Assembly (NCBI GenBank): GCA_002269645.1 | Contig: NIVC01000995.1 | Coordinates: 310,001 to 374,000 of the forward strand | Reading direction: 5' to 3' | Length of the DNA: 64,000 nucleotides | Source of the DNA: Macrostomum lignano | Taxonomy: Eukaryota | Shown: one piece after another, positions 18,858-46,759 of the stretch | Position numbering within the stretch: position 1 is the first letter of the stretch | Layout of the letters: the number at the start of each line of letters is the position of its first letter | The notes under the pieces: model-generated | The model's database searches: none | Told to the model about the DNA's origin: nothing | Seen by the model: only the letters and a program-made list of their open reading frames with translations | Made by a program: the position numbers and the translations under genes

Positions 18858-21800
18858 ATGTCGCAGCCAAATCCCGGATTCTTGAGATCTCTGTTTGCGA
18901 CAATTCTACTGCTGACTATTGCGGCATCTGCGGCTAAGTCGCAAACTATCAAGATTGGTAGGGAAAACTTTCAATTGCTGATCCTTTTACTGCCGAAAAT
19001 GTTTTTTATCTAGAAAAACTACTAACCAGCTTCTCTAAGAAACACAGCGCTCCCCTTCGTCCAATTCAGCATCAAATCTTTACATTCCCAAGAGGTTGGA
19101 AATAACGAAGCCCGACGAGGCGCGAAGACAATTATTATTGGGCGAATAAATTATTATATAGATAAATTTTCTGATCGGTTTTTGATCTCGAACGAGCTCG
19201 TGAGATTATTGCCGCTGGCCTGCACTGTCACGAATTTTGCGACAGCAGGACCTGCTCTGTGCGAATCCGGGATTAGCGCTCGACAAGGCGCTTCTTTTGC
19301 GCTGCTGCAGGGCCTTTTCTAGTGGGATAATTTCTTTCCCCTTCCAGCCCCCTTGCCAGCCCCGATGGCCAGGCGGGTTGAAGGCAGCTCATCTGGAAAC
19401 TGGGCCAAACAGACGAATACAGCGGTGCCAATAATGAATTACAACCTGGAGGCGCAGTCGCAATTCAAAACGCTCGCCAACCGGAAAGACGAACGCCGTT
19501 CACGCTCTGGCTTGCGCTATTATTTTTCCTGGAAAAGATGGGGGGAGAAAATAAAAAAACGCACGCCCCCGTTCCGACTGGCACCGATTCAAGTCGCGTC
19601 CAAATCCCCAGATTTATTTTAATTTATTGAAGAAAATTTGGCATTCAGTATTTTGCAAAATTTATTGCTTCTGGGGCGTTTGCATAGCGCGATGAGTCCG
19701 AATGAGGAACACATTCGCGCGGTAACTAAGCTATCTTTCGAGGCTTTGAGACATGATTTTATAACCCTCCGACCCGAATGCAGGTGTGCACAACGATGTG
19801 AAGATTTTGAACTCTCTAACCAGCTTGAACAGTTCCGAGGTGGCCAGATTATTCAACATCACTTTTATAAATGTCAGCAGTTTCCATTTAGGCCCCGACC
19901 CGGAGACTCTGGTCCAGGTGCGCTCCTGTAAGTTTCTGTCGTGCTTTCAAATGCAAACTTTTTCAGAGGGCATAAGGAAAAACACAGGAGTGTCATACAA
20001 AGTAGAAACAGCTGGGTGTCACTAGAAACAGCGGGGTGTCACTAGAAACAGCTGGGTGTCACTAGAAACAGCTGGGTGTCACTAGAAACAGCTGGGTGTC
20101 ACTAGAAACACAGGGGTGTCACTAGAAACACAGGGGTGTCACTAAAAACAGCTGGGTGTCACTAAAAACAGCTGGGTGTCACTAGAAACAGCTGGGGGTC
20201 ATTAGAAACAGCTGGGTGTCACTAGAAACAGCTGGTTTCACTAGAAACAGCTGGGTGTCACTAGAAACAGCTGGTTTCACTAGAAACAGCTGGGTGTCAC
20301 TAGAAACAGCGGGGTGTCACTAGAAACAGCAAGGTGTCACTAGAAACACAGGGGTGTCACTAGAAACACAGGGGTGTCACTAGAAACACAGGGGTGTCAC
20401 TAGAAACACAGGGGTGTCACTAAAAACACAGGGGTGTCACTAGAAACACAGGGGTGTCACTAAAAACACAATGGTGTCACCAGAAACACAGGGGTGTCAC
20501 TAGAAGCACAGTGGTGTCACTAGAAACACAGGGGTGTCACTAAAAACACAGGGGTGTCACTAGAAACACAGGGGTGTCACTAAAAACACAGGGGTGTCAC
20601 TAAAAACACAGGGGTGTCACTAGAAACACAGGGGTGTCACTAAAAACACAGGGGTGTCACTAGAAACACAGGGGTGTCACTAGAAACACAGGGGTGTCAC
20701 TAAAAACACAGGGGTGTCACTAAAAACACAGGGGTGTCACTAAAAACACAATGGTGTCACTAGAAACACAGGGGTGTCACTAGAAACACAGGGGTGTCAC
20801 TAAAAACACAGGGGTGTCACTAGAAACACAGGGGTGTCACTAGAAACACAGGGGTGTCACTAAAAACACAGGGGTGTCACTAGAAACACAGGGGTGTCAC
20901 TAAAAACACAATGGTGTCACTAGAAACACAGGGGTGTCACTAGAAACACAGTGGTGTCACTAGAAACACAGGGGTGTCACTAGAAACACAGTGGTGTCAC
21001 TAGAAACACAGGGGTGTCACTAGAAACACAGGGGTGTCACTAAAAACACAGGGGTGTCACTAGAAACACAGGGGTGTCACTAAAAACACAATGGTGTCAC
21101 TAGAAACACAGGGGTGTCACTAGAAACACAGGGGTGTCACTAAAAACACAGGGGTGTCACTAGAAACACAGGGGTGTCACTAGAAACACAGGGGTGTCAC
21201 TAAAAACACAGGGGTGTCACTAAAAGCACAGGGGTGTCACTAAAAACACAGGGGTGTCACTAAAAACACAGGGGTGTCACTAAAAGCACAGGGGTGTCAC
21301 TAAAAACACAGGGGTGTCACTAAAAACACAGGGGTGTCACTAAAAACACAGTTGAGTGTCACTAGAAACAGCGGGGTGTCATTAGAAACAGCTGAGGTGT
21401 CACTAGAAACAGCTGGGGTGTCACTAGAAACACAGGGGTGTCACTAGAAACACAGTGGTGTCACTAAAAACACAGGGGTGTCACTAGAAACACAGGGGTG
21501 TCACTAAAAACACAGGGGTGTCACTAGAAACACAGGGGTGTCACTAAAAACACAGGGGTGTCACTAGAAACACAGTGGTGTCACTAAAAACCCAGGGGTG
21601 TCACTAGAAACACAGGGGTGTCACTAGAAACACAGGGGTGTCACTAGAAACACAGGGGTGTCACTAAAAACACAGGGGTGTCACTAGAAACACAGGGGTG
21701 TCACTAAAAACACAGGGGTGTCACTAGAAACACAGGGGTGTCACTAGAAACACAGGGATGTCACTAAAAACACAGGGATGTCACTAAAAAGCAGCGCAAT

Positions 21801-24800
21801 TGTGAGAGAGGAATTTTCAGGAAAGAATCGCGAGGGACGAATTGTCAGAGAGGAATTGTCAGAGAGTAATTGTCAGATAGGAATTGTCAGGGAGAATTTG
21901 TCAGAGAGTTTCATGCAATGTTCAACTGTGAAGCAGCTGGAGACTGCAATTGTCTTCATAAAGACACGGTCACACCGACAAACTTTGGTCAGACTTGGAA
22001 TCGGTCAGGTCGAACCCGCCGCACCTGATCATCGGCGGCTACAATGGCACAGTGTCAGCCATTGCCAGCGAGCTGGGCATTCCGTACTATTGCACCAGCC
22101 CGAGCCATCAGAGCCCGCTGCTGATGGACGCAACCTACCTGAATGCCAGCTCGCTGCTGCTCATGAACTCTTACATGGAAGACATGATTGCGGCGGCCCA
22201 GCAGCTCACTAACTCCATCATTCAGCGGCAGGCTTTGATTGTGGTTACCGATGACATCAGTGACAGTGAGTGATAAGTGTTTAACAATCATGAGTGAGAG
22301 TGCTCTGGGTGACAATGTCCTGAGTGACAGTGTCCTGAGTGACAGTGTCTTGAGTGACAGTGTCCTGAGTGACAGTGTCCTGAGTGACAGTGTCCTGAGT
22401 GACAGTGTCCTGAGTGACAGTGTCCTGAGTGACAGTGTCCTGAGTGACAGTGTCCTGAGTGACAGTGTCCTGAGTGACAGTGTCCTGAGTGACAGTGTCC
22501 TGAGTGACAGTGTCCTGAGTGACAGTGTCCTGAGTGACAGTGTCCTGAGTGACAGTGTTCTGAGTGACAGTGTCCTGAGTGACAGTGTCCTGAGTGACAG
22601 TGTCCTGAGTGACAGTGTCCTGAGTGACAGTGTCCTGAGTGACAGTGTCCTGAGTGACAGTGTCCTGAGTGACAGTGTCCTGAGTGACAGTGTCTGAGTG
22701 ACAGTGTCCTGAGTGACAGTGTCCTGAGTGACAGTGTCCTGAGTGACAGTGTCCTGAGGGACAGTGTCCTGAGTGACAGTGTCCTGAGTGACAGTGTCCT
22801 GAGTGACAGTGTCCTGAGTGACAGTGTCCTGAGTGACAGTGTCCTGAGGGACAGTGTCCTGAGTGACAGTGTCCTGAGTGACAGTGTTCTGAGTGACAGT
22901 GTCCTGAGTGACAGTGTCCTGAGTGACAGTGTCCTGAGTGACAGTGTCCTGAGTGACAGTGTCCTGAGTGACAGTGTCCTGAGTGACAGTGTTCTGAGTG
23001 ACAGTGTCCTGAGTGACAGTGTTCTGAGTGACAGTGTCCTGTGTGAGTGTGGTGATTATGCATAACTATTCAGAGTTTATGATTAATTGTGCCAATTTGC
23101 AATGGTTCCAGGCGTGAATTTCCTGCTGAACTCGCTGTCCGACCAGGCCCTGCACATGGTACTTCTGAACGGTTCTATTCGCGATTCGCTGTACAATGCC
23201 AGTCTTAAATTCAACATTAGCTCGGCAGTGTTCCAGACAATGTTCACGTCCGACCTCATGCTCGAGGCCCTACTGCCTGAAGTGAGCGGCACTCTGGTTA
23301 CAACGCGGGGTGTTGAATAGCAAAGAATAACAATACGTATCGTTAGTGAATCAAATTATTAAATAATAACTAGTCACAATCACACACCACTTCTTCAGGC
23401 TGCCCGGCTGAGTCTAATGAAAAATGTATCGTTCTGGATCATCACAGACTTGGTGAGTGACTATGAGATGTGCTCAGTCTCTAACCCAAGCCCCCGTCTT
23501 AAATAGAAAGTAATTCCTCTGTCTTAAGTCATGACAATGATCTTCATTGTGTTGCTGTGTTCTGTTGTCGCTGAAAAAGCAATCAAATTAAGTCGCCACT
23601 CCGCTCCCGCAGTTTCCCAACAGCAGTCAGCTGCTGGCGTACCGCAGAACGGGCTGCACAATGTTCTCCTTTGCGCTGCAGTCTGCAGCGTCCAATGTGA
23701 CGAGTCCTGATGCCCTGACGCTGGCGATGGCGCAGGACGCAATTAATCACTACCTGAAGGTGGTCGATGGTGGCCGTTTGTCATTCGATCTGTCGAGAGC
23801 GCTATTGGTAAACAAATAACTGTACAATCTCTGAATTCCTGTTTATTTAATTGGTTCCAACGCTTGTAAACGCATAAAAGCAATAAATATCCAACTCAGA
23901 CAAGCTACAATGGAATACTGGGCCAACTGCACTTTAGTTCCGGCACCAGACGGAATTTGTACAGCCAGCTCAATACAATGATGACGTCATACAGGCTTCC
24001 CTACTTGGAAGAGGTGATGCATGAGGCTTGTGTTGTGATTTGCGATTCTGGCTTCTGATCTTTAGCTCCTCTGCTGGTTTCACAACCAAGCCACCAGATC
24101 CCCAACCAAGCCACCAGATCCCCAACCAAGCCACCAGATCCCCAACCCAGCCACCAGATCCCCAACCCAGCCACCAGATCCCCAACCAAGCCACCAGATC
24201 CCCAACCAAGCTACCAGATCCCCAACCCAGCCACCAGATCCCCAACCAAGCCACCAGATCCCCAACCAAGCCACCAGATCCCCAACCCAGCCACCAGATC
24301 CCCAACCAAGCCACCAGATCCCCAACCCAGCCACCAGATCCCCAACCAAGCCACCAGATCCCCAACCCAGCCACCAGATCCCCAACCAAGCCACTAGATC
24401 CCCAACCAAGCCACTAGATCCCCAACCCAGCCACCAGATCCCCAACCAAGCCACCAGATCCCCAACTAAGCAACCAGATCCCCAACCAAGCCACCAGATC
24501 CCCAACCAGCCACCAGATCCCCAACCAAGCCACCAGATCCCCAACCAAGCCACCAGATCCCCAACCAAGCCACCAGATCCCCAACCAAGCCACCAGATCC
24601 CCAACCAAGCCACCAGATCCCCAACCAAGCCACCAGATCCCCAACCAAGCCACCAGATCCCCAACCAAGCCACCAGATCCCCAACCAAGCCACCAGATCC
24701 CCAACTAAGCAACCAGATCCCCAACCAAGCCACCAGATACCCAACCAAGCCACCAGATCCCCAACTAAGCAACCAGATCCCCAACCAAGCCACCAGATCC

Positions 24801-27800
24801 CCAACCAAGCCACCAGATCCCCAACCAAGCCACCAGATCCCCAACCAAGCCACCAGATCCCCAACCAAGCCACCAGATCCCCAACCCAGCCACCAGATCC
24901 CCAACCAAGCCACCAGATCCCCAACCAAGCCACCAGATCCCCAACCAAGCCACCAGATCCCCAACCAAGCCACCAGATCCCCAACCAAGCCACCAGATCC
25001 CCAACCAAGCCACCAGATCCCCAACCAAGCCACCAGATCCCCAACTAAGCAACCAGATCCCCAACCAAGCCACCAGATCCCCAACCAAGCCACCAGATCC
25101 CCAACCAAGCTACCAGATCCCCAACCAAGCCACCAGATCCCCAACCAAGCCACCAGATCCCCAACCAAGCCACCAGATCCCCAACCAAGCCACCAGATCC
25201 CCAACCAAGCCACCAGATCCCCAACCAAGCCACCAGATCCCCAACTAAGCAACCAGATCCCCAACCAAGCCACCAGATCCCCAACCAAGCCACCAGATCC
25301 CCAACCAAGCCACCAGATCCCCAACCAAGCCACCAGATCCCCAACCAAGCTACCAGATCCCCAACCAAGCCACCAGATCCCCAACCCAGCCACCAGATCC
25401 CCAACCCAGCCACCAGATCCCCAACCCAGCCACCAGATCCCCAACCAAGCCACCAGATCCCCAACCAAGCCACCAGATCCCCAACCAAGCCACCAGATCC
25501 CCAACCAAGCCACCAGATCCCCAACCCAGCCACCAGATCCCCAACCAAGCCACCAGATCCCCAACCAAGCCACAAGATCCCCAACCAAGCCACCAGATCC
25601 CCAACCAAGCCACCAGATCCCCAACCCAGCCACCAGATCCCCAACCAAGCAACCAGATCCCCAACCAAGCCACCAGATCCCCAACCAAGCCACCAGATCC
25701 CAGACCGATTAAAGCAGACTCAACTCGTCTCAATAAAATCGCAGTTCGGGGTCTGGGCCAAGAACAACTCTGGCGGCATCGCTTTGATCCGAGGCGGCCT
25801 CAGAAGCAAGCTCCCAATTTTGCGCGTGCTTACCTTTATGGTAAGTGGATTCTTGAGAATACATCTGCAGCTTTTACTCTCCAGCTATCATGCTAAATAA
25901 TTATTAAAATGAAAAAAATAATCAAATGTGCATACGAGCGTAGATAAGATATGAGTCGTTCTACCATAGATATGAGTCGATCTACCATAGGTACGAGTCG
26001 TTCTACCATAGATACGAGTCGTTCTACCATAGATATGAGTCGATCTACCATAGGTACGAGTCGTTCTACCATAGATACGAGTCGTTCTACCATAGATATG
26101 AGTCGATCTACCATAGGTACGAGTCGTTCTACCATTGATACGAGTCGTTCTACCATAGGTACGAGTCGTTCTACCATAGGTACGAGTCGTTCTACCATAG
26201 ATATGAGTCGATCTACCATAGGTACGAGTCGTTCTACCATAGATAAGAGTCGATCTACCATAGATACGAGTCGATCTACCATAGATATGAGTCGATCTAC
26301 CATAGATATGAGTCGATCTACCATAGATATGATTCGATCTACCATAGATACGAGTCGATCTACCATAGATGCGAGTCGATCTACCATAGATACGAGTCGT
26401 GCTATCATAGATAAGAGTTCAGAAATAGTTTTGATATAAATCAATTACTTAATATTAATGATTGATCTCTCTGCCTGAATGCCCGATAATTTTACAGCGT
26501 CAGCCCTTCACGATGGCCTCGCCAACTGAGTACTACGGCTTCAGCATCAGCGTGCTGAATCATCTGAGCGCCGGCCTATTCGAGTGGGACGTGGTGCCTG
26601 TGGCTGAAAATGGCGACCTGCTGCCGCTGCTGCGCCAAGGGGTCAGTGATGGGATTTGAATAGCCAGTCCCTCCCAGAAAAAACCGATATCCCAATCCTA
26701 CCGGATAATCTATTGATGACATCCATGATTATCCCTCAATTATTCATAATAATCTATTAATAACCCATCGATAATCCTTCGATAATCCCTTGATAACCTT
26801 CGATAATCCCTTGATAATCTTGATAATCCCATAATAATCCTTCGATAATCCCTTGATAATCTTGATAATACCATGAGAATCCTTCGATAATTCCTTGATA
26901 ATACTGATAATCCCTTAATAACCCATTGATAATCCACTGATAATCCATTGATGATCCCTCGATAATCCTGTTCCAGGCTGGCGATCTGATAGCCAACCCC
27001 ATGCAGATGCCGTTAGACAACATCAAGAACGACTCAAACGTTAGCTACTCCTCCTGGCCGCTGATGTACACCAGCGTGTCGGCCATGGGCTACGCGGAGA
27101 GTCCCAAGCTGAGCTTCCTCAGTCCGCTGTTCCCGTTCTCCTGGAACGTCTGGCTCGCCGTAGTCGTGGCTTTCGTGATCCTGTCGGCGACTCTCTACTC
27201 CATAGACAAGATAAGCCCGAATGATTACAGGCGACCGAAGTTCAGCATCTCGGAGTCCGTGTTCTTCGTCTATTCATCCTTCATGATGTCCAAGCTGAGC
27301 GCCAAGGCTATCAAACCGTCGTCAAGGATATTCATCTTAATCCTGTGGTTCGCCTCGCTGATGTACTGCACCACTTACGGCACCAACGCCTTCTTCCTGC
27401 TGATCCGCAGCAACCGAGCTTTGCCGTTCACCTCGCTGGACGGGCTGTACAACCAGAGCGGCAGGTACTACCGGGTCCTGGTCGAGAACAGCACCAGCTC
27501 CGGGATCCTGGCCGCTCAGCCTGAAGGATCTGTCTACAGGAAGCTGGCCACCGCCGATCTGTGGGTCGAGTCGGAGGAGGCGGCCCTGGCGCTAATAAAG
27601 AACCAGACGGCTCTGCCAGATGGTCGGCAGCCAGTTTACGTCGGCGACGGCGCCGCAATCAGCTACGCGGTGGCGAAGTCCTGCGACCTGATGATGGCCG
27701 GCAGCAATGAGCTGTACAGGCCGTTGTTCCTGGCGATGCGGGCAGGGCTGGACCCGCAGCTCCGGCGGACCATCAACGACAGGATTCAGAGCATGTCTGA

Positions 27801-29231
27801 CCGGGGTCTGCTGGACCAGTACAAGGACACGTGAGCTACCCAGTTATTTTGCAGGGGGCTTTGGTACTGCCGCTAATCTCAGTCGACAGCCAGTCCCAGG
27901 CCCACTCCGCTGACTCGGATTCGTACGCAGGCACGCGCTCACACAGGGTGTACAGCGGCCCTGACTTTCTCATTGTCAGGCATGTACACTCTCTGCGCTG
28001 CAGGGGGCTCCGGGCATCCCGACACAGCGGGGAGGCGTCGCCGCCCATTTCTTAAACACCTGGCGAACACGGCAGCCGGTGCTGCGGTGTCGCGCAGGGA
28101 GATCCGGTGGTGCAGGTGTCCGCAGTGCGGTCCTCCTCCGGAGAGTCCATTAGAAGGACTCTGCCCCCTATAGAGATAAGCACCTGGGATTCCATGAGCT
28201 GATCACCTGGGATTCCATGAGCTGATCACCTGGGATTCCATGAGCTCATCACCTGGGATTACATGAGCTCATCACCTGGGATTCCATGAGCTCATCACCT
28301 GGGATTCTATGAGCTTATCACCTGGGATTCCATGAGCTGATCACCTGGGATTCCATGAGCTCATCACCTGGGATTACATGAGCTCATCACCTGGGATTCC
28401 ATGAGCTCATCACCTGGGATTCTATGAGCTTATCACCTGGGATTCCATGAGCTGATCATCTGGGATTCCATGAGCTGATCATCTGGGATTCCATGAGCTG
28501 ATCACCTGGGATTCCATGAGCTCATCACCTGTGATCCCATGAGCTCATCACCTGAGATTCTATGAACTGAGCACCTGGGATACCATGAGCTCAGCACTTG
28601 GGATTCAATGAGCTGATCACCTGGGATTCCATGAGCTGATCACCTGGGATTCTATGAGCTCATCACCTGGGATACCATGAGCTCATCACCTGGGATAACA
28701 TGAGCTCATCACCTGGGATAACATGAGCTCATCACCTGGGATAACATGAGCTCATCACCTGGGATACCATGAGCTCATCACCTGGGATACCATGAGCTCA
28801 TCACCTGGGATAACATGAGCTCATCACCTGGGATACCATGAGCTCATCACCTGGGATAACATGAGCTCATCACCTGGGATAACATGAGCTCAGCACTTGG
28901 GATTCCATGAGCTGATCACCTGGGATACCATGAGCTCAGCACTTGGGATTCCATGAACTCATCACCTGAGATTCTATGCAATGGGCGCATTGATATTAAA
29001 TAATATCTTTCATTCAATTCAAATGCAACCCTCCCAACCCGACTCAGTTACTGGTCGGAGATAAAATGCTCATCAAACGACTATCTGATCAACGCGAAGG
29101 AGCTGAACTCAATCCATATCGAGCAGGTGTCCGGCATTTTCATAGTGCTGGCCTGCGCACTGGGCCTGTCCTTCATTGTGCTGCTGCTTGAGCACGCGTT
29201 CTACCAGCTGCAGCTGTACTGGCACCGAATG
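18858..29231 (+). CDS. Divergent ionotropic glutamate receptor-family protein (ATD, S1 lobe, M1-pore-M3, S2 lobe, M4)
   Basis: Phase-consistent exons 18858-18957 (signal, TIKIG), 19784-19927, 21993-22265, 23112-23281, 23399-23452, ~23631-23807, 23900-24013 (YNGILGQLHF..RRN), 25745-25840 (FGVW..LRVLT), 26498-26641 (PF..YYGFSISVL), 26977-27830 (LSFLSPLFPFSWNVW, FSISES, SSRIFILILW, CDL), 29048-29231 (YW...C, VSGIFIVLACALGLSFIVLLLE). Confidence 0.88.
19995..21790. repeat. 20-bp minisatellite in receptor intron 2
   Basis: Unit aaacacaggggtgtcactag, ~90 copies by length. Confidence 0.97.
22290..23040. repeat. 15-bp minisatellite in receptor intron 3
   Basis: Unit gagtgacagtgtcct; resembles the upstream exon/intron junction cagtgaca|gtgagtg. 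Confidence 0.97.
24085..25700. repeat. 20-bp minisatellite (intronic)
   Basis: Unit ccaaccaagccaccagatcc. Confidence 0.97.
25945..26415. repeat. 21-bp minisatellite (intronic)
   Basis: Unit gagtcgttctaccatagatac. Confidence 0.95.
26715..26968. repeat. Degenerate gataatcc-based repeat (intronic)
   Basis: Recurrent gataatccctt/gataatcttt motifs running up to the acceptor at 26976. Confidence 0.8.
27896..28010 (+). mobile_element. ~200-bp structured dispersed repeat, copy 3 (partial, intronic)
   Basis: gcccactccgctgactc..tacgcaggcacgcgctcacacagggtgtacagcggccctgac...gtcaggcatgtacactc. Confidence 0.75.
28178..28975. repeat. 23-bp minisatellite (intronic)
   Basis: Unit cacctgggattccatgagctcat. 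Confidence 0.95.
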
Positions 29232-29558
29232 GCAAGTTCTAGTGTGAAATATGGAATTTTGAGTAGTCAGTTTTTTCAGTGGATGAATTAAAGTACCTTT
29301 AACATGTAGCGCATAGAAACGATGGGTGCGGTGTGTGCCTTCCTGTTAGTCTGAGCATTCACTGCTGGCTAAATGGTAATCGCTAAAATTCAGGTATGCA
29401 CAATGGGATTTGATGATGCGTGGAAAAATTCTATATCTTTGCTGTATTGACTAAGATTGCAAATTAGGGATTCGAGTCCAGGACCTTAAATGCAAGCTGT
29501 GGGAGCTTTGGCTACATACATGATACTGAGACTTGCCAACCACCTGCGCTCATTCCAG

Positions 29559-31131
29559 AAGGTGAACTCTCGCCTTGAGTTCATGAAGCCATATCAGGCC
29601 GAGGTCACAAACGTGACGCCCAGCGGCATCAGGGTGCGAGTGCAGGGCTGGGTGGAATTCCTGCCCAACCAAATGCTGTCGCCGGACCCCACCAAGGTTG
29701 GTGCGACTGCGCTGATTCATGCTTTGAGAACGAAGTGGCTGGGATCACGGAAGCTGGCCCAGTAACTGGGGATCTGGGAGGCTGGCCCAGCAAATGAGGA
29801 TCTGGGAGGCTGGCCCAGTAACTGGGGATCTGGGAGGCTGGCCCAGCAAATGAGGATCTGGGAGGCTGGCCCAGCAAATGAGGATCTGGGAGGCTGGCCC
29901 AGCAACTGAGGATCTGGGAGGCTAGCCCAGCAACTGAGGGTCTGAAAGGGGGTGGTAGGTGTATCTGGCTCTCAGATAAAATCGAAATTCCCGAAATTAT
30001 CTGTAAATCAGCTTCGAAAAAATTGAAAAAAAAGTTTATTGCAAATCGCATTTTCAAAAATTATGTTTTTAATTATGCTGGTTGTCAAAGAAGCGTGTAG
30101 AATTCTGCTTGCTAGTTTGAATAATCCTTCTTAACTTACATTATGTAGGTTATACAAAAGTGTTCGCGCCATCGCAGAGTGCAGAGTACAGAGTGCAGAG
30201 TGGAAAGTGCAGAGAGGAGATAGCAGAGTGCAGAGTAAAGAGTACAGAGAGCAGAGTGCAGAGTGGAAAGTGCAGAGAGAAGATAGCAGAGTGCAGAGTA
30301 AAGAGTACAGAGAGCAGAGTGCAGAGTAAAGAGTACAGAGAGCAGAGTAAAGAGTAAAGAGTACACAGAGCAGAGTTCAGAGAGCAGAGTGCAGAGTGCA
30401 GAGTGCAGAGTGCAGAGTGCAGAGTGCAGAGTGTAGAGTGCAGAGTGCAGAGTGGAGATAGCAGATAGCAGAGTGGAGAGTACAGAGTGCAGAGAGGAGA
30501 TAGCAGAGTGCAGAGTGCAGAGTACAGAGTGCAGAGAGGAGATAGCAGAGTGCAGAGTGCAGAGTACAGAGTGCAGAGAGGAGATAGCAGAGTAAAGAGT
30601 ACAGAGTGCAGAGTGTAGAGTGCAGAGTGCAGAGTGTAGAGTGCAGAGTGCAGAGTGGAGATAGCAGAGTACAGAGTCATTATTGCCTGTTCCGCGCCAG
30701 CGCAAGATTTCAGAAGCCGGATTTCACAGGGGAGCAAAAAACTTCAAACGGACGCAGCCACTGACAAAGTAAGGATTCTGTAAATCCAGTAAAAATGCCG
30801 CGTCATCGAACCCCCCCCCCTCCCCGATAGATTTCATGATCCATCAAACGCAGCCGAAATCCGAGGGGGGGGGCAACCCGAGTCTGGCTTCTTGCAATTC
30901 GATGTTCTGCCGTCGATCGCTCTTCATCATTTTGCTGTTTACACAATCAAACGACCGCAGCTTCCTCCCTCCGCATCGCCCCCCCCACCGCAGAAAATGA
31001 CGGCCGCCGATTTGGAGATTCGCATCGGCGACTCGGTTGAGGTTGTTTACCTTGGCAACGATCCAAAAACTGGAGAGCGATTGTTCAGACGGAACGCCGA
31101 GTCGGTTGAAGTTGGCAAAATTGGCATCTGA
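29559..31131 (+). CDS. Two exons (29559-29696, 30994-31131) encoding a PNPase/PNPT1-type S1 RNA-binding domain; probably the C-terminal tail of the upstream receptor
   Basis: KVNSRLEFMKPYQAEVTNVTPSGIRVRVQGWVEFLPNQMLSPDPTK|KMTAADLEIRIGDSVEVVYLGNDPKTGERLFRRNAESVEVGKIGI*. Canonical phase-0 AG/GT sites (ttccag|aag, aag|gttggt, ccgcag|aaa); S1 beta-barrel pattern. Confidence 0.75.
29750..29945. repeat. 28-bp minisatellite, short array (same family as 33836-35495)
   Basis: Unit ctgggaggctggcccagcaactgaggat. Confidence 0.95.
30170..30675. repeat. gcagagt-based 7-bp degenerate repeat
   Basis: Runs of gcagagt with interruptions. Confidence 0.9.
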
Positions 31132-31514
31132 GAATTTCGGTGCAAATGATTGATGAAAATTGGCGAACCCTGGTTGATCGATTGAACACTTATTTTTTAG
31201 CGACTCTACCGACATTGTCGCGAAGCTTTGCTACTTGAGTTCGTTTTCTCCTGTTCATTTCTTAGAATACAGGATCCATTTTCTTCGTGTATTTTTACCA
31301 TTTATCCAAAGCGAACCGATGTGACTTGTGCAGTATCTGAGCACAGTTTCATGTCGAGTGTTTCTTGGCGGTCAAGAGAAGCTCAAACTTAAATATAGCG
31401 ACTTGCTTAGTATCACAGACTCATTGAAGCGCTTAGAATTACCTAGTGGGCTTCGATAGAGCGTGGGTTCAGTGCCCAAAGATTCAACTGTCCTTCATTA
31501 AGCGGGTCTGTGAT

Positions 31515-32715
31515 TCAGATTCTCATAGTTCAGATTCTCATGGTTAAGATTTTCATGGTTCAGATTCTCATGGTTCAGATTCTCATGGTTCAGATTCTCA
31601 TGGTTCAGATTCTCATGGTTCAGATTCTCATGGTTCAGATTCTCATGGTTCAGATTCTCATGGTTCAGATTTTCATGGTTCAGATTCTCATGGTTCAGAT
31701 TCTCATGGTTCAGATTCTCATGGTTCAGATTCTCATGGTTCAGATTCTCATGGTTCAGATTTTCATGGTTCAGATTCTCATGGTTCAGATTCTCATGGTT
31801 CAGATTCTCATGGTTCAGATTCTCATGGTTCAGATTTTCATGGTTCAGATTCTCATGGTTCAGATTCTCATGGTTCAGATTCTCATGGTTCAGATTCTCA
31901 TGGTTCAGATTTTCATGGTTCAGATTCTCATGGTTCAGATTCTCATGGTTCAGATTCTCATGGTTCAGATTCTCATGGTTCAGATTCTCATGGTTCAGAT
32001 TCTCATGGTTCAGATTCTCATGGTTCAGATTCTCATGTTCAGATTCTGTTGCAGATTCTCATGTTGCAGATTCTGTTGCAATTCAGACTGTTGCAATTGA
32101 GACTGTTGCAATTCAGACTGTTGCAATTGAGACTGTTGCAATTGAGACTGTTGCAATTGAGACTGTTGCAATTGAGACTGTTGCAATTGAGACTGTTGCA
32201 ATTGAGACTGTTGCAATTGAGACTGTTGCAATTGAGACTGTTGCAATTCAGACTGTTGCAATTGAGACTGTTGCAATTCAGACTGTTGCAATTGACTGTT
32301 GCAATTGAGACTGTTGCAATTCAGACTGTTGCAATTGAGACTGTTGCAATTCAGACTGTTGCAATTGAGACTGTTGCAATTGAGACTGTTGCAATTGAGA
32401 CTGTTGCAATTGAGACTGTTGCAATTGAGACTGTTGCAATTGAGACTGTTGCAATTGAGTCTGTTGCAATTGAGACTGTTGCAATTCAGACTGTTGCAAT
32501 TGAGTCTGTTGCAATTGAGACTGTTGCAATTCAGACTGTTGCAATTGAGACTGTTGCAATTCAGACTGTTGCAATTGAGACTGTTGCAATTGATACTGTT
32601 GCAATTCAGACTGTTGCAATTGAGACTGTTGCAATTGATACTGTTGCAATTGAGACTGTTGCAATTGAGACTGTTGCAATTGAGACTGTTGCGATTGAGA
32701 CTGTTGCAATTCAGA
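31515..32715. repeat. Two abutting 15-bp minisatellites (atggttcagattctc then gactgttgcaattga)
   Basis: Switch through hybrid units at ~32030-32090. Confidence 0.97.
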
Positions 32716-33551
32716 CCGGTGGGTTCGCCTTTCTAAGTTTCCATTCACAGTTTTTGTTTTTCAGACGCTCACCAGGCCTCTGCTTTCCAAGCAATTGCTT
32801 CTTTATTTCCTGAACTAAAAGCCTGTTTTCTGCCGAGCCACTCTCACGACTGCTAGCGAGGCGCAGGCGACCCGGTATTAAGCCGAACCTGGCCGCAGAA
32901 ATAACATTCCTGAGCGGCATTGGGTCTGCCAGTTGGCTCCTGGGCAGCAGCTGCAGTTGGCGCCAGGCAGTTCAAGCAGGTCAAAGCAACAGCCAGCGAA
33001 TGAGGGCAATTGCACAGCCTGGCTACATGGACTCCGCTGCTGCTGCTGCTGCTGCTGCTGATGTTGCTGCGACTTTGCATTAATGAAAGCAAAAGTAAGA
33101 GAGGAGACAGACAGAAATGCAGATGCAGCTGTTAGTGCCTAGGCGCCATAGCTATCCACCTATATCAACCGCATTCTATACACTTTACTAACGTAAAAAC
33201 TTGATCTTGACCTTGATTGGCAGACAGATAGAAACTGCCATCACTTATCGCATCACTTGTCATATAGCTTAAATTTGGGCGCTAATACTAGATAGAATCA
33301 GATACTGTCGCGAGCTACCAACAAGCAAGTGGGCAGGGGGGGTTAGCTATAGTGAGAGAGACCATCTGGCATCTGATTGGCTAGCCGCTGCCACCACTCT
33401 GTAAGCAAAGCGGAGTCCGTACCGCACTGCGCGGGCGCCATTAAAAAAGGAAAGAAATCCGAGGGGTCCGCGGCGACGGCGGCAAGTTCTTGACGAGACT
33501 GGGCTGACTACCGCGACTCTTCCACGACTTTGACAGAACTGGCAGCAGGGC

Positions 33552-36500
33552 ATGCTCACTCCCAACGCCACCTTCGGCATGGCGGCCGCTGCGGCCAGCA
33601 ACGCCAGCTCCTACCCTGCGGGCCTGAACTCCAGCCTGGACGCGAACACCACCTACGACAACGGGACGACGGCGACGTCAGCGATGTCCATCGGGTTCCA
33701 GCCGAGATTTGGGCCGCTGCAGATTGTCATGACCAGCCTGCTGCTGGGCATCATGATTCTCTGCACCATTGTTGGCAACGTGTTTGTGGTGGCGGCCATC
33801 ATCTTGGAGAGAAACTTGCAGGTGAGACCGGATTAGGGATCTGGGAGGCTGGCCCAGCAACTGAGGATCTGGGAGGCTGGCCCAGCAACTGAGGATCTGG
33901 GAGGCTGGTACAGCAACTGAGGATGTGGGAGGCTGGCCCAGCAACTGAGGATCTGGGAGGCTGACCCAACAGCTGAGGATCTGGGAGGCTGGCCCAGCAA
34001 CTGAGGATCTGGGAGGCTGGCCCAGCAACTGAGGATCTGGGAGGCTGGCCCAGCAACTGAGGATCTGGGATGCTGACCCAGCAGCTGAGGATCTGGGAGG
34101 CTGGCCCAGCAACTGAGGATCAGGGAGGCTGGCCCAGCAACTGAGGAGCTGGGAGGCTGGTGGCAAAGAAACTGAGGATCTGGGAGGCTGGCCCAGCAAC
34201 TGAGGATCTGGGAGGCTGGGCCAGCAACTGAGGAGCTGGGAGGCTGGTGGCCCAGCAACTGAGGATCTGGGAGGCTGGCCCAGCAACTGAGGATCTGGGA
34301 GGCTGGGTCAGCAACTGAGGAGCTGGGAGGCTGGTGGCCCAGCAACTGAGGATCTGGGAGGCTGGCCCAGCAACTGAGGATCTGGTAGGCTAGCCCAGCA
34401 ACTGAGGATCTGGGAGGCTGGCCCAGCAACTGAGGATCTGGGAGGCTAGCCCAGCAACTGAGGATCTGGGAGGCTGGCCCAGCAACTGAGGATCTGGGAG
34501 GCTGTGGCCCAGCAACTGAGGATCTGGGAGACTGGGCCAGCAACTGAGGAGCTGGGAGGCTGGTGGCCCAGCAACTGAGGATCTGGGAGGCTGGCCCAGC
34601 AACTGAGGATCTGGTAGGCTAGCCCAGCAACTGAGGATCTGGGAGGCTGGCCCAGCAACTGAGGATCTGGGAGGCTAGCCCAGCAACTGAGGATCTGGGA
34701 GGCTGGCCCAGCAACTGAGGAGCTGGGAGGCTGTGGCCCAGCAACTGAGGATCTGGGAGACTGGGCCAGCAACTGAGGAGCTGGGAGGCTGGTGGCAAAG
34801 AAACTGAGGATCTGGGAGGCTGGTGGCCCAGCAACTGAGGATCTGAGAGGCTGGCCCAGCAACTGAGGATCTGGGAGGCTAGCCCAGCAACTGAGGATCT
34901 GGGAGGCTGGCCCAGCAACTGAGGAGCTGGGAGGCTGGCACAGAAACTGAGGATCTGGGAGGCTGTGGCCCAGCAACTGAGGATCTGGGAGGCTGGCCCA
35001 GCAACTGAGGATCTGGGAGGCTAGCCCAGCAACTGAGGATCTGGGAGGCTGGCCCAGCAACTGAGGAGCTGGGAGGCTGTGGCCCAGCAACTGAGGATCT
35101 GGGAGACTGGGCCAGCAACTGAGGAGCTGGGAGGCTGGTGGCAAAGAAACTGAGGATCTGGGAGGCTGGTGGCCCAGCAACTGAGGATCTGGGAGGCTGG
35201 CCCAGCAACTGAGGATCTGGGAGGCTAGCCCAGCAACTGAGGATCTGGGAGGCTGGCCCAGCAACTGAGGAGCTGGGAGGCTGGCACAGAAACTGAGGAT
35301 CTGGGAGGCTGTGGCCCAGCAACTGAGGATCTGGGAGGCTGGCCCAGCAACTGAGGATCTGGGAGGCTAGCCCAGCAACTGAGGATCTGGGAGGCTGGCC
35401 CAGCAACTGAGGAGCTGGGAGGCTGGCCCAGAAACTGAGGATCTGGGAGGCTGTGGCCCAGCAACTGAGGATCTGGGAGGCTGGTGACCCAGTAAGCAGT
35501 AACTGGGGATCTTGCATGGCTGTAGGTTAGACATGGAAAAAGTGCAGTGAAACGTACGGATTTGAAAGCAATCTGCAAAGAGATCAATACCAAGCGCTAT
35601 TCAGCGTATTAAAGAAAAGTTTCTGTTTCTTTTACTTGACAAAAATCTACAAAGGCTCCCGCTAAAAACCCAAGCTCTTGCGATTCCACATGAGAACCGG
35701 GCGGCTGGGCCGCCCCCGAGGATTTCGGGTCACCGATCGTCTTCACAGAGAAAAGGAAAACAGACAAAGACAAACAGAACGAGGCGCGGCTGGGGACTGA
35801 GGATCAAAGCGGGATGGGGGAACTAAAAGCAAAGTCTCTTTGGCTGTAAAGAGGAGAAATTCGACAGCTTTTAGTGCAAATTAGCGGCGGAGGAAGAGGC
35901 GGGCCGGAATTGCAGGCGGGAGGCAGGGAGACAAGGTGAATGCAAAACAGGGGGCGGATCAAGCAGTCGTCATCATAGGCTATGCAGAACATTCTGTTGC
36001 TTTAAAAGCCTCCCAGATAAAAGACTCGACCAATTCGAGACGAAGTATCCCTTGGGATGAACTCCGGGGGTGGGGAGGGGAGGTGTGTAGCTTTGGCTGC
36101 TCAGTTGCTATGCAAGCCGGCTTACTTCAAAGGGGAAGCTACCTGAGCACAGCTGCTGCGCTACTCCTATATCTACTAAATATGAAAATCCGAATGCGGG
36201 TCATAAAACACTGCTCACTTCAGATAGGTCAGTCCCTGTTTATTGGTCGATTGAGTTCCATACATTGCTGCGAGTTAGTCCAGCTTTGAGTAGGGGTTCG
36301 AGAGCTAGGGAGATTAGTAGTCTCATCGACTAATGAGATTAGCGACACTTGAGCCGCGGAGTGAAGTCGCTGCTACACTTTTGAGTACGTTTTAGCCGGA
36401 TACTATTGAATTTGCCCAGCGGTGCAAATGAGATATATCACTATGAGCGACTGAGTCTCTCTAGCTGATGTCTCACCGGTGTCTCAACCGATTCTCTCCA

Positions 36501-39500
36501 GCTGATGTCTCACCGGTGTCTCAACCGAGTCTCTCTAGCTGATGTCTCACCGGTGTCTCAACCGAGTCTCTCTAGCTGATGTCTCACCGGTGTCTCAACT
36601 GAGTCTCTCTAGCTGCCGTCCCACCGGTGTCTCAACCGAGTCTCTCTAGCTGTTGTCCCACCCCGGTGTCTCAACTGAGTCTCTCTATCTGATGTCCAAC
36701 CGGTGTCTCAACTGAGTCTCTCTATCTGATGTTCAACCGGTGTCTCAACTGAGTCTCTCTAGCTGATGTCTCACCGGTGTCTCAACTGAGTCTCTCTAGC
36801 TGATGTCTCACCGGTGTCTCAACCGAGTCTCTCTAGCTGATGTCTCACCGGTGTCTCAACCGAGTCTCTCTAGCTGATGTCCAACCGGTGTCTCAACCGA
36901 GTCTCTCTAGCTGATGTCCCACCCCGGTGTCTCAACTGAGTCTCTCTATCTGATGTTCAACCGGTGTCTCAACTGAGTCTCTCTATCTGATGTTCAACCG
37001 GTGTCTCAACTGAGTCTCTCTAGCTGATGTCTCACCGGTGTCTCAACTGAGTCTCTCTAGCTGATGTCTCACCGGTGTCTCAACCGAGTCTCTCTAGCTG
37101 ATGTCCAACCGGTGTCTCAACCGAGTCTCTCTAGCTGATGTCCCACCCCGGTGTCTCAACTGAGTCTCTCTATCTGATGTTCAACCGGTGTCTCAACTGA
37201 GTCTCTCTAGCTGATGTCTCACCGGTGTCTCAACCGAGTCTTTCTAGCTGATGTCCAACCGGTGTCTCAACCGAGTCTCTATCTGATGTCCAACCGGTGT
37301 CTCAACCGTGTCTCTATCTGATGTCCAACCGGTGTCTCAACCGAGTCTCTATCTGATGTTCAATCGGTGTCTCAACCGAGTCTCTGTCTGATGTCCCACC
37401 GGTGTCTCAACCGAGTCTCTGTCTGATGTCCCATCGGTGTCTCAACCGAGTCTCTGTCTGATGTCCCACCGGTGTCTCAACCGAGTCTCTGTCTGATGTC
37501 CCATCGGTGTCTCAACCGAGTCTCTATCTGATGTCCCACCGGTGTCTCAACCGAGTCTCTATCTGATGTCCCACCGGTGTCTCAACCGAGTCTCTGTCTG
37601 ATGTCCCACCAGTGTCTCAACGGATGAACTCAGACAGCAGTGGCTATTCGAACTCAAGCTGGCCTCAACTATGATACACAATTAAGCATGAGTTGCGGCA
37701 TTTACCCACCAACCGAGTTAGTTATGAGAGAAGAAGCGAATTGGCAGTTCAAGAAAATTATCCTGCCCCCAGCATTGGAATTTTCTGTCAGCTAAATATT
37801 AATAAACCCCTTGGGGTGCCGAATGGAGAAAAGTGTTCGCAACTGTGTCCCGGAAAATTCACAAGCAGTTTTGCACCAGCTGATTACTAATCGGTTGGCA
37901 ATAGTTCGTGCCTAAGATGCCACATCAGCCCCAGGGGCAACTGGGGGGGGGGAGCAGGAGAAGGGAGATGTGGGAAAACGACGGCCGACCTGCAGCCTGG
38001 CTCGGGTCCCGGCCTGGCCTCTCCAGATGGCCGGATGGCCGGCGGACATGCTGGCTGGGTGCATTTGCCACGCAGATGCACCCAGCCAGCGAGGCTTGAT
38101 TGACACCGGCCCGTCTGCTTGCAGGAGCAGCTTAATTATATTAAATTATCTTCCTGCGGTGCCAGACCATTCATTGTTCATCAATTTTGCCAGCCCTTTC
38201 TATAGCATGGGAGGGTGGTACTCAGAGAGTACTCATCGATGCCAAACCGGTCCATCTTGATTAATTAATATCGGGAGCTGAGGTGCAGCATCCAGGATGA
38301 TGCAAATTCGCGTCCGGAAATTGTCTAATTGCCGAATTACGAAACCGCAAACCAAACAGAGAGTTGTAGGCAAACTTAGTCACCTGCCTACCTCTGCCTC
38401 TCCATCTCGATAGAAGGGATTTTCCCTGATTAGCATCCTAAACTCCAATCCAAGAGACAGTGGCGCCTCACTAAGAGACAGTGGCGCCTCACTAAGAGAC
38501 AGTGGCGCCTCACTAAGAGACAGTGGCGCCTCACTAAGAGACAGTGGCGCCTCACTAAGAGACAGTGGCGCCTCACTAAGAGACAGTGGCGCCTCACTAA
38601 GAGACAGTGGCGCCTCACTAAGAGACAGTGGCGCCTCACTAAGAGACAGTGGCGCCTCACTAAGAGACAGTGGCGCCTCACTAAGAGACAGTGGCGCCTC
38701 ACTAAGAGACAGTGGCGCCTCACTAAGAGACAGTGGCGCCTCACTAAGAGACAGTTAAGAGACAGTGGCGCCTCACTAAGAGACAGTGGCGCCTCACTAA
38801 GAGACAGTGGCGCCTCACTAAGAGACAGTGGCGCCTCACTAAGAGACAGTTAAGAGACAGTGGCGCCTCACTAAGAGACAGTGGCGCCTCACTAAGAGAC
38901 AGTTAAGAGACAGTGGCGCCTCACTAAGAGACAGTGGCGCCTCACTAAGAGACAGTTAAGAGACAGTGGCGCCTCACTAAGAGACAGTTAAGAGACAGTG
39001 GCGCCTCACTAAGAGACAGTGGCGCCTCACTAAGAGACAGTGACGCCTCACTAAGAGACAGTGGCGCCTCACTAAGAGACAGTGGCGCCCCACCAAGAGA
39101 CAGTGGCGCCCCACCAAGAGACAGTGGCGCCTCACCAAGAGACATTGGCGCCTCACTAAGAGACAGTTAAGAGACAGTGGCGCCTCACTAAGAGACAGTG
39201 GCGCCCCACTAAGAGACAGTTAAGAGACAGTGGCGCCTCACTAAGAGACAGTTAAGAGACAGTGGCGCCTCACTAAGAGACAGTGGCGCCTCACTAAGAG
39301 ACAGTTAAGAGACAGTGGCGCCTCACTAAGAGACAGTTAAGAGACAGTGGCGCCTCACTAAGAGACAGTGGCGCCCCACTAAGAGACAGTTAAGAGACAG
39401 TGGCGCCTCACTAAGAGACAGTGACGCCTCACTAAGAGACAGTGGCGCCCCACCAAGAGACAGTGGCGCCTCACTAAGAGACAGTGGCGCCCCACCAAGA

Positions 39501-42500: not shown

Positions 42501-43440
42501 AATAAATCAGCCCTACTCTACAGGTGTGCACCTGTGCGACCTGTGGACCTGCCTAGACGTGCTGTGCTGCACAGCTTCGATCCTGCACCTGGTTGGCATA
42601 GCGGTTGATCGCTACTGGGCCGTCACCAACATCAACTACATCAGAGCCCGCACCGGACGCCGCATCGGCCTGATGATCGCCGCCATTTGGATCATCAGCG
42701 CCGCGATCAGCGCCCCGGCGCGCTTCTGGCGCATGAGGAAAGAGCCGGACGAGTGTCGCATCAACGAATCGCCAGCTTACACCGTATTCTCAACTGTTGG
42801 CGCCTTCTACCTGCCCATGCTGTTCATGATCGGCATCTACCTGAGAATTTATCACGCCGCTCGCAAAAGAATTCGTCGGAAAGCCTTCAAGCCAAGCCAG
42901 CCGGCGGCTTCGGCCGCGGCAACTGCCGCTGCGACGGCGCAGCAGCAGCAGCAGCAGGCGGCGAAAAAATCCACATCCGATTCCGACCACACGCCGGAAG
43001 TGTCCAGTGGCGCAGGTCCCTGTCAAACGACGTCATTTAGCGCTACTACTAAAAAGCTGAACTCAAAGCAGAAAAAACAGCAGCAGAAACAGCTACAACA
43101 AAACGGTCGAGCAGAAGCTCAGGAGCGCATCACCATCCAGTCCAAAGCGGCTATGCAGCGCGAGAGGCTGGAACAGAAACGAGAAAGGAAGGCAGCAAGA
43201 ACCCTGGCGATAATTACAGGCTGCTTTCTGTTCTGCTGGTTCCCCTTCTTCGTTCGAGCCATAGTCTGTCCCTTCTATTCGCCGCTGTGCACCGACCTCA
43301 TCTCCGAGACTGGGCACTCGTTGATCCAGTGGTTGGGCTACACAAACAGCCTGCTCAATCCAGTGATATACACCATCTTCTCGCCGGACTTTCGCAGCGC
43401 ATTTAGCAAGATCCTATTTGGACGTTACCGACGAAGGTGA
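33552..43440 (+). CDS. HTR1: Serotonin receptor, 5-HT1-like class A GPCR (3 exons: 33552-33821, 39861-39969, 42524-43440)
   Basis: GNVFVVAAIILERNLQ|SVSNYLILSLAVADLMVA..VMP; TM3 LDVLCCTASILHL..IAVDRYW; AFYLP; KRERKAARTLAIITGCFLFCWFPFF; WLGYTNSLLNPVIY; splice phases are consistent. Confidence 0.93.
33836..35495. repeat. 28-bp minisatellite in 5-HT receptor intron 1
   Basis: Unit ctgggaggctggcccagcaactgaggat, starting ~15 bp after the donor. Confidence 0.97.
36455..37620. repeat. 35-37-bp minisatellite (intronic)
   Basis: Unit tgagtctctctagctgatgtctcaccggtgtctcaac. Confidence 0.95.
38452..39590. repeat. 21-bp minisatellite (intronic)
   Basis: Unit gagacagtggcgcctcactaa. Confidence 0.97.
39679..39800 (+). 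mobile_element. ~200-bp structured dispersed repeat, copy 4 (degenerate)
   Basis: ctcacagggtgtacagaggcccagactttcacatctttaggca matches the core of the other copies. Confidence 0.55.
40017..40660. repeat. 31-bp minisatellite in 5-HT receptor intron 2
   Basis: Unit agtctcaaactgagtcactaactgctctatc; each unit contains TGAGTCA. Confidence 0.96.
42185..42405. repeat. G-rich ~30-bp repeat (intronic)
   Basis: Unit ggcagagtggcgggggtgaggactggcact. Confidence 0.9.
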
Positions 43441-46323: not shown

Positions 46324-46544
<221 letters not shown>

Positions 46545-46759
46545 TTCATCATATTTGTCGACGCCAATTTCCAGCGCCAATGAAGTAGGCCTATGTTCGG
46601 CAATATTGCCAAAATGCGATATCTGCTGCTTGGCTGGGCGTGTCTGCGGGGTGGATGGTGGGGCGCCCCTGCACTTCTCAGCGCCTCATCTGGGCGCCAA
46701 TTGAGCCCGCAAATGAGGTGGAACTGGTTGGCCCCGGCACTGTTGGAGCTGGGGGTTGA

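Follow-up and report, generated by a model that had tools for sequence, protein, structure and literature searches.

An ionotropic glutamate receptor family of flatworms with a predicted PNPT1-type S1 domain after the last membrane helix

We analyzed a window of 64,000 nucleotides (nt) from the flatworm Macrostomum lignano (assembly GCA_002269645.1, contig NIVC01000995.1, positions 310,001 to 374,000, forward strand; the coordinates below count from the first letter of this window). The window consists of repeat-rich eukaryotic DNA. It contains the 3′ part of a gene whose product is a divergent member of the ionotropic glutamate receptors (iGluRs), and in this gene the exon for the last membrane helix of the channel (M4) is followed by two exons encoding an S1 domain. 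This arrangement had been proposed from the letters of the sequence in an earlier reading, hereafter the original prediction. Good evidence now indicates that the gene belongs to a real and conserved group of iGluRs that have captured a folded domain, predicted to be cytoplasmic; what that domain might do is read from its sequence and is discussed with corresponding reserve.

The iGluR-S1 gene and its transcript

A coding sequence (CDS) of 513 codons, obtained by joining six spliced exons of the window, is identical, except for a partial first codon, to GenBank PAA64932.1 (P0001). The record carries the title [quoted passage not shown], comprises 513 amino acids (aa), and is 100% identical to the query made from the upstream channel exon and M4. 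The exons, introns, and satellites of the gene are the following.

25757-25840, + strand: first exon of the annotated 5′-partial CDS, placed by tblastn of P0001 and of an older model of the locus, P0003, and by reconstruction of the CDS
26498-26641, + strand: exon for part of the extracellular ligand-binding domain (RQPFTMASPTEYYG...LLRQG), an exact match to P0001, with acceptor ttttacag and donor gtcagt
26977-27830, + strand: large exon for the remainder of ligand-binding lobe 1, M1, the M2 pore loop, M3, and lobe 2, with donor gtgagc in phase 2
29048-29231, + strand: M4 exon (YWSEIKC...GIFIVLACALGLSFIVLLLEHAFYQLQLYWHRM), ending ...YWHRM in phase 0
29232-29558, + strand: GC-AG intron of 327 nt, donor GCAAGT, acceptor cattccag
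29559-29696, + strand: S1 exon a, encoding a basic linker and strands 1-3 (KVNSRLEFMKPYQAEVTNVTPSGIRVRVQGWVEFLPNQMLSPDPTK; it starts KVNSRLEFMKPYQAEV...DPTK), phase 0, donor gttggt
29697-30993, + strand: intron within the S1 domain, 1297 nt
30994-31131, + strand: S1 exon b, encoding strands 4-5 (KMTAADLEIRIGDSVEVVYLGNDPKTGERLFRR; it starts KMTAADLEIRIG...GKIGI) and a short tail, with acceptor caccgcag and the stop codon TGA at 31129-31131
24083-25701, 25947-26418, 26770-26969, 28181-28978, 29742-29944, 30174-30677, and 31514-32716: tandem-repeat satellites of the gene

The original prediction had the M4 exon end in ...YWHRM at a GC-type donor at 29232, and this agrees both with the sequence and with P0001. 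The phase-0 acceptor that it placed 327 nt further on, at 29559, and the second in-frame exon at 30994 are likewise exact in the sequence and in PAA64932.1, the C-terminus of which reads ...YWHRM/KVNSRLEF...DPTK/KMTAADLE...GKIGI (slashes mark exon junctions). Because the NIVC01 annotation was built from RNA-seq data (StringTie/TACO together with de novo transcripts) and not ab initio (PMC5730564), the two joins, at the GC-AG intron and at the intron within S1, both go back to RNA. The annotation pipeline split transcription units wherever spliced-leader or poly(A) reads occurred (PMC5730564), and it placed no cut between M4 and S1. Independent support comes from a relative: the Logan contig L001 (SRR28338165; 1369 nt) encodes a protein, P0002, with 54% amino acid identity to that of the window. 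This contig lacks three of the window's introns, and its single reading frame leads from the channel across M4 and on to S1 strands 1-3 (“...NLEFNTSYRALVTSITPAGVYVKLHGEKEFIPNHMLSPDASK”), after which it continues with gtagag..., resembling a retained S1 intron; the length of its M4-S1 linker is that of the GC-donor isoform. The predicted joins thus coincide with an annotation derived from RNA-seq and have an echo in the cDNA-like contig of the 54% identical relative; the fusion is transcribed as a single reading frame.

An alternative GT donor lies at 29244, 12 nt beyond the GC donor. It is used by P0003 (UniParc UPI0007A2BE68; 974 aa), in which the junction YWHRM/KVNS of P0001 is replaced by YWHRMASSS/KVNS, with the additional residues ASSS. 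The same model combines Lig_chan, S1, and 7tm_1: from a donor after 31107 it is joined in frame to 7tm_1 exons at 33534-43434, those of a G protein-coupled receptor (GPCR). The continuation into the GPCR most likely reflects a chimera or a read-through unit, so that caution is called for at the locus; the M4-S1 join is unaffected by it.

Contig NIVC01001699.1 is 99.2% identical to positions 24134-32446 of the window and, by this identity, represents the same locus in another assembly or copy. The two differ at just 5 positions across 29000-31300, too few for any statement on selection. Short-unit satellites, with units of 20, 21, 22, 23, 28, 7, and 15 bp, lie in nearly every intron and flank of the gene; the S1-internal intron contains a 28-bp satellite (29742-29944) and an array of the 7-mer GCAGAGT (30174-30677). 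The 20-bp satellite at 24083-25701 abuts the first annotated exon (25757), which is probably why the GenBank model is 5′-partial, and the true 5′ exons of the gene lie upstream of 25757. When exons for an amino-terminal domain were sought with an M. lignano paralog, P0004, weak matches alone (E ~2) were obtained, at 21962-22270 and 23083-23205. Upstream of the annotated CDS, an open reading frame (ORF) at 18858-19010 (+ strand; MSQPNPGFLRSLFATILLLTIAASAAKSQ...) resembles a signal peptide and is a candidate only, and ORFs at 21962-24055 (+ strand) have a faint, non-significant likeness (E ~2) to the amino-terminal half of the paralog (GIPYY/GIPYF). These ORFs may possibly be the missing 5′ exons.

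The channel part is a genuine iGluR, if a divergent one. Lig_chan (PF00060) matches residues 131-399 of P0001 with 68.2 bits (cut-off 30.8), the protein aligns with GluA2 at E 7e-21, and a Foldseek search with the full model retrieves structures of the ligand-binding and transmembrane domains of AMPA/kainate receptors at E 1e-18. Shared with these receptors are Lig_chan, the order of M1, pore loop, M3, and M4, and, probably, the bilobed ligand-binding domain. SBP_bac_3 scores 22.1 bits on P0001, below its cut-off of 26.4, in a region where the AlphaFold2 model is of low confidence; in the relative P0015, SBP_bac_3 and Lig_chan-Glu_bd reach 41.9 and 38.8 bits. The divergence from AMPA/kainate receptors is considerable (~20% identity). 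The M3 gate motif is TTYGTNAFF where SYTANLAAF stands in iGluRs, and, as read from the GluA2 alignment, the agonist-carboxylate Arg of lobe 1 is apparently replaced in the window protein by Asn with an adjacent Lys. In lobe 2, the Ser/Thr and the acidic residue that contact the ligand have counterparts in the alignment with GluA2 (NST, D). Given the gate motif and the apparent replacement of the lobe 1 Arg, glutamate is no safe guess for the ligand, and we consider it doubtful.

The S1 tail and its receptor family

The region behind M4 had been predicted to be an S1 domain of the type found in animal PNPT1, and this identification was borne out by domain, profile, and structure searches. The isolated 91-aa tail matches Pfam S1 (PF00575) with 24.7 bits (cut-off 22; E 3e-5). 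In a single-sequence search of the PDB, the only single-stretch match across most of the tail was the S1 domain of human PNPT1, and E. coli ribosomal protein bS1 had the lower whole-sequence E-value. The profile built from 11 tails (alignment A2) matched human PNPT1 residues 630-705 with E 4.6e-16 and 62 bits, whereas the E-values were 4e-5 for ribosomal bS1 and ~0.01 for bacterial PNPases. With PNPT1 so clearly the best match of this profile (4.6e-16 versus 4e-5), the domain is, on the evidence of sequence, specifically of the animal PNPT1 type. The PNPT1 S1 domain (human structures 9kjt, 9njb, and 9kjr) is the best sequence relative of the tail by 11 orders of magnitude, and the two share the motifs LEFG..Y.A.V, ..N.QL, and V.YFG.DP....R as well as the five-stranded oligonucleotide/oligosaccharide-binding (OB) barrel.

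The AlphaFold check of the tail that had been proposed gave the same answer. AlphaFold2, run on an alignment of M4 plus tail, returned a model with a predicted local distance difference test score (pLDDT) of 81.8, composed of the M4 helix, an 8-residue linker, and 5 strands. The helix covers residues 24-63 of the query and the strands residues 72-80, 84-89, 92-97, 121-129, and 136-140, forming a five-stranded antiparallel beta-barrel with pLDDT ~82-95 across the domain. The top 50 Foldseek matches of this model are essentially all S1-domain proteins, with the best sequence identity, 28%, to human PNPase. The S1/OB-fold domain is complete, begins ~8-10 residues past M4, and is encoded by the last two exons.

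The remainder of PNPase was sought and not found. Pfam RNase_PH, PNPase, and KH domains are absent from six proteins with the channel (P0001, P0004, P0007, P0009, P0014, and P0015), and no RNase PH, PNPase, or KH match was obtained on the + strand from 9.5 to ~24 kb, where ORFs with a minimum length of 50 aa were covered, low-complexity ORFs excluded. On the minus strand, ORFs of at least 50 aa were listed over 9.5-33.5 kb, and a few long ORFs from across the window were scanned against Pfam, with nothing relevant to the fusion among them. To judge by its domains, the iGluR-S1 protein is not a PNPase and shares the S1 module alone. It also differs from PNPT1 in that its S1 domain hangs from the membrane helix of a channel, and nothing about its context points to mitochondria.

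When M4 plus tail was compared exhaustively with 1.84e9 representative proteins (phmmer, E ≤ 1e-3), 14 matches were obtained, including the query's own P0001. All but one span the M4 region into the S1 tail, the exception being a 60-aa S1-only fragment (P0012), so that 12 further proteins have M4 followed by this tail; in the long proteins (571-949 aa), the aligned part is at the C-terminus. The named sources are M. lignano, with a second paralog (A0A1I8HFD1, 783 aa), the monogenean Cichlidogyrus casuarinus, Schistocephalus solidus (949 and 950 aa), Spirometra, Anoplocephala perfoliata, and Rodentolepis nana, so that every match from a named organism in this search is a flatworm. Lig_chan lies above its cut-off in 6 members (P0001, P0004, P0007, P0009, P0014, and P0015). 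Two members come from Tara Pacific coral long-read metagenomes: P0005 and P0015, the latter a complete 857-aa receptor with S1, encoded by an intronless ORF. P0015 scores 147 bits against the M. lignano paralog and 75 bits against the best solved iGluR, which favors a single origin of the fused family. Searches of sequence indices with the tail alone or the tail alignment returned almost nothing; this reflects a limit of the index and not absence, as PAA64932.1 itself contains the tail.

Gene structures within the family are related but not uniform. M4 and S1 exon a form a single exon in Cichlidogyrus, and the coral-metagenome contigs encode the whole fusion as intronless ORFs. The S1 intron after strand 3 (DPTK/K in the window) falls in the identical alignment column in Cichlidogyrus (EHIK/F) and in the same place in L001, and Spirometra isoforms imply an intron at that point as well; the Rodentolepis intron (TSKG/P) is displaced by about 1 residue, in a loop of uncertain alignment. 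M. lignano and Rodentolepis have the linker intron, which Cichlidogyrus lacks. A further Rodentolepis nana exon resembling S1 exon b lies on contig UZAE01000396.1 (L010) at 14911-15006 (− strand) and is 53% identical to the last exon of P0014. Its position just downstream on the opposite strand suggests two family members arranged tail to tail.

A comparison of the window with L001 gave ratios of nonsynonymous to synonymous substitution rates (dN/dS) of 0.31 for S1 exon a, 0.23 for M4, and 0.29 for the channel exon; these values are rough, with dS saturated (~1.4-2.2). The dN/dS check proposed for the S1 exons thus gave a value near that of the channel, and from this similarity the constraint on the tail seems to be of the same order. 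The search for iGluR-S1 proteins in related flatworms, likewise proposed, found them in Monogenea, in Cestoda, and in the second M. lignano paralog. Taken together, these sequences define an old, conserved receptor family in Macrostomorpha, Monogenea, and Cestoda that is under selection. The original prediction had envisaged an exon capture: the in-frame fusion of iGluR and S1 stands, but the event is neither local nor peculiar to one gene, given an old family in three flatworm groups.

That no iGluR of this architecture had been described, as also claimed, holds in so far as full-text searches found no literature on iGluRs with an S1, PNPT1, or OB-fold tail; the sequences themselves, however, were already public under automatic names, among them “S1 motif domain-containing protein” and, for Schistocephalus, “Polyribonucleotide nucleotidyltransferase 1”. 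The UniProt entries of Schistocephalus presumably derive from the transcriptome project of that species. This project named its proteins after their best hits in Swiss-Prot (PMC4891850), and the second label, being such a transfer, is not a description. Two database errors are exposed in this way, namely, a 949-residue channel named as a polyribonucleotide nucleotidyltransferase and the 974-residue model that fuses channel, S1, and GPCR.

Possible function and competing explanations

In the simplest history, one ancestral flatworm (or older) iGluR gene would have gained the S1 exons of PNPT1, and the family would then have diversified. The tail had been assigned to the cytoplasm, which agrees with standard iGluR topology and with the N-terminal, signal-peptide-like hydrophobic leaders of full-length relatives; S1 would accordingly face the inner side of the membrane at close range. 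In a tetramer, up to 4 S1 barrels would sit within ~10 residues of the inner leaflet, ringing the cytoplasmic mouth of the pore. There, close to the membrane, they could bind a polyanionic ligand, for which single-stranded RNA or a particle of RNA and protein is the likeliest candidate. Binding might couple the receptors, which are probably chemosensory or synaptic, to RNA localization, or the ligand might modulate trafficking or gating. We regard the architecture of channel plus S1 and the PNPT1 origin of the domain as highly probable, and the explanation as a whole (a fused family with a PNPT1-type S1 domain serving as a polyanion-binding module) as probable. The specific step to RNA binding is put forward tentatively and may well prove wrong, and it seems somewhat less likely still that the S1 domains of the whole family continue to bind RNA, with the channel anchoring or sensing transcripts or ribonucleoproteins at the inner face of the membrane.

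The surface of the domain is ambiguous in this respect. We take the RNA-binding residues of the E. coli PNPase S1 domain to be Phe19, Phe22, His34, Asp64, and Arg68 (as reportedly numbered by Bycroft in 1997) and mapped them by eye onto the family alignment. Of 12 tails, 8 have an exposed aromatic residue (Trp, Tyr, or Phe) at the Phe22 equivalent, and the counterparts of Asp64 and Arg68 are mostly conserved. Most tails are basic (+4 to +12), although net charges in the family span −8 to +12. The columns conserved throughout the family, as judged from sequence, are mostly core residues, with invariant Tyr, Gly, Phe, Gly, and Phe. Compared with PNPT1 S1, the flatworm tails have lost the His34 equivalent, and most have gained a Trp in strand 2.

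A number of observations weigh against a tailed, polyanion-binding receptor family of flatworms. On the side of the binding surface, the His34 equivalent is Pro, Ala, Gln, or another residue, and the Phe19 equivalent is non-aromatic; in the window copy, Arg stands in the place of Phe22 and the net charge is only +1, and the tail with −8 is that of Rodentolepis. When the whole protein was scanned, Pfam S1 reached 20.2 bits, just below the cut-off of 22. As regards distribution, no planarian or trematode member appeared in the single-sequence search. At the locus itself, the read-through stop TAA (29289-29291) overlaps an ATTAAA (29287-29292), and since both sit just inside the GC-AG intron, a tail-less channel isoform may be produced; from the stop at 31131 to 33440, there is neither an AATAAA nor an ATTAAA that would mark a 3′ end for the long isoform.

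The signals in the GC-AG intron also lend themselves to an explanation by two products, in which the channel ends at the TAA and is polyadenylated after the ATTAAA, and S1 is a downstream cistron of an operon-like unit that receives a spliced leader at 29559, the AUG of which starts a free S1 protein of 92 residues. These products could be the only form or an extra output, and as an extra output they are formally possible. The overlapping stop and ATTAAA lie 267 nt upstream of the acceptor, the sequence of which, TTCCAG, agrees with the motif [T/C]TNCAG of trans-splice sites in M. lignano, and the 35-nt leader ends in ATG, in frame with the phase-0 exon (PMC8629364). Operon spacers in M. lignano peak near 100 bp and are counted up to 1 kb (PMC8629364), and ~7% of the assembled units are polycistronic precursors (PMC5730564). 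Yet the very pipeline that cut at leader and poly(A) reads left M4 and S1 together as a single gene, and L001 crosses the same junction in frame. M4 and S1 also share an exon in Cichlidogyrus and an intronless ORF in the coral metagenomes, an M4 helix precedes S1 in every homologue that extends that far, and no free-standing S1 homologue emerged from the search of 1.84e9 representative proteins. The RNA-derived model, L001, and the same-exon and intronless fusions contradict two products as the sole explanation, and we judge the two-product reading improbable. Far less probable is a chimeric gene model or assembly artefact comparable to the older GPCR-joined model of 974 residues. P0003, with its Lig_chan, S1, and 7tm_1, proves that false joins occur at the locus; the M4-S1 join, however, is RNA-seq-derived, the window and NIVC01001699.1 agree (99.2% identity, with the 5 differences across 29000-31300), and the same architecture recurs in independent genomes, a transcript-like contig, and metagenomes, covering at least 6 named species. 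Least credible of all is a decaying PNPT1 gene or pseudogene fragment lying downstream of the channel and occasionally exonised. It would account for PNPT1 S1 being the closest sequence relative of the tail, but it sits poorly with the intact frame, the good splice sites, a dN/dS of ~0.3, the lack of RNase PH and KH matches in the upstream + strand ORFs from 9.5 to ~24 kb, and the conservation of motifs and intron position across flatworm classes.

The most serious competitor, less likely than not but rated a little above RNA binding, accepts the fusion and holds that S1 no longer binds nucleic acid. The domain would instead serve in contacts with proteins or lipid headgroups, in assembly, or in trafficking, and would replace the disordered tail that is usual in iGluRs. 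This reading draws on the loss of the His34 and Phe19 equivalents, the Arg of the window copy, the spread in net charge, and the core-like character of the invariant columns; at 8-10 residues from the bilayer, Trp and basic residues could moreover touch lipid. Most members are nevertheless clearly basic, 8 of 12 have a solvent-facing aromatic residue in strand 2 that is missing from human PNPT1, the Asp64 and Arg68 equivalents mostly persist, and the fold is still near that of PNPT1 S1 (62 bits).

The polyanion-binding reading and its non-binding competitor both imply an unusual receptor. The C-terminal tails of iGluRs are normally disordered and recruit scaffolds and kinases. The flatworm tail, unlike those of AMPA/kainate receptors, is a folded OB domain and not a disordered segment with PDZ and kinase sites, and a folded, conserved domain of nucleic-acid-binding type directly under the pore amounts to a different iGluR design. 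The closest parallel among divergent members of the family is provided by the variant ionotropic receptors (IRs) of protostomes, reportedly described by Benton in 2009 and Croset in 2010. The flatworm family resembles these in being a divergent clade with degenerate agonist-binding and gate motifs and a lineage-specific expansion; the likeness implies no orthology to IR25a or IR8a, and by analogy a chemosensory role is a reasonable guess. To our knowledge, IRs do not carry a folded C-terminal domain. Another kind of parallel is the cation channel TRPM2, the NUDT9-homology domain of which has an established ligand, ADP-ribose, and an established role in gating. There, too, a cytoplasmic C-terminal domain was captured from a mitochondrial nucleotide-handling enzyme, and in TRPM2 it senses a ligand and does not act as an enzyme. 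The flatworm channel and its domain are both unrelated to those of TRPM2.

Should the RNA-binding proposal hold, channels of the neurotransmitter- or chemoreceptor-type would be linked directly to the localization or sensing of RNA, for example, to local translation at sensory or synaptic membranes, or RNA would serve as a cytoplasmic modulator of gating. We know of no ionotropic receptor for which direct coupling to RNA has been described. Were the ligand a different one, the family would still be a natural case of a mitochondrial enzyme module turned into an accessory domain of a channel, as with TRPM2 and NUDT9. Since tapeworms and monogeneans have the family, it may represent a lineage-restricted receptor class of relevance to parasite biology. 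Transgenesis is established in M. lignano (PMC5730564).

Neighboring features of the window

Downstream of the iGluR-S1 gene lie exons of a rhodopsin-family GPCR (7tm_1) of aminergic appearance, as follows.

33534-33821, + strand: GPCR exon
39855-39920, + strand: GPCR exon
40763-40858, + strand: GPCR exon
42526-43434, + strand: GPCR exon

UPI0007A2BE68, which fuses these exons to the channel, is probably chimeric; alternatively, the iGluR-S1 and GPCR genes share a transcription unit. Upstream, an ORF at 10349-10750 (+ strand) matches Pfam Hormone_3 (NPY/pancreatic polypeptide) over ~10607-10705 with E 1.1e-9 (...PEALKEYLERLQLYYALVGRPRY) and, from this match, seems to be an exon for the precursor of neuropeptide F. 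Its frame departs from the peptide near the RPR(F/Y) end, and NPY-family genes carry an intron near this end.

A non-LTR (long terminal repeat) retrotransposon occupies 4717-6972 (+ strand), with an APE-type endonuclease (Exo_endo_phos_2, 69 bits) and RVT_1 in two ORFs; this split suggests that the element is probably frameshifted. Finally, an ORF at 46070-46771 (− strand) has a sub-threshold match to DDHD (22.7 bits, cut-off 28.3) and may be an exon of a phospholipase-type gene.

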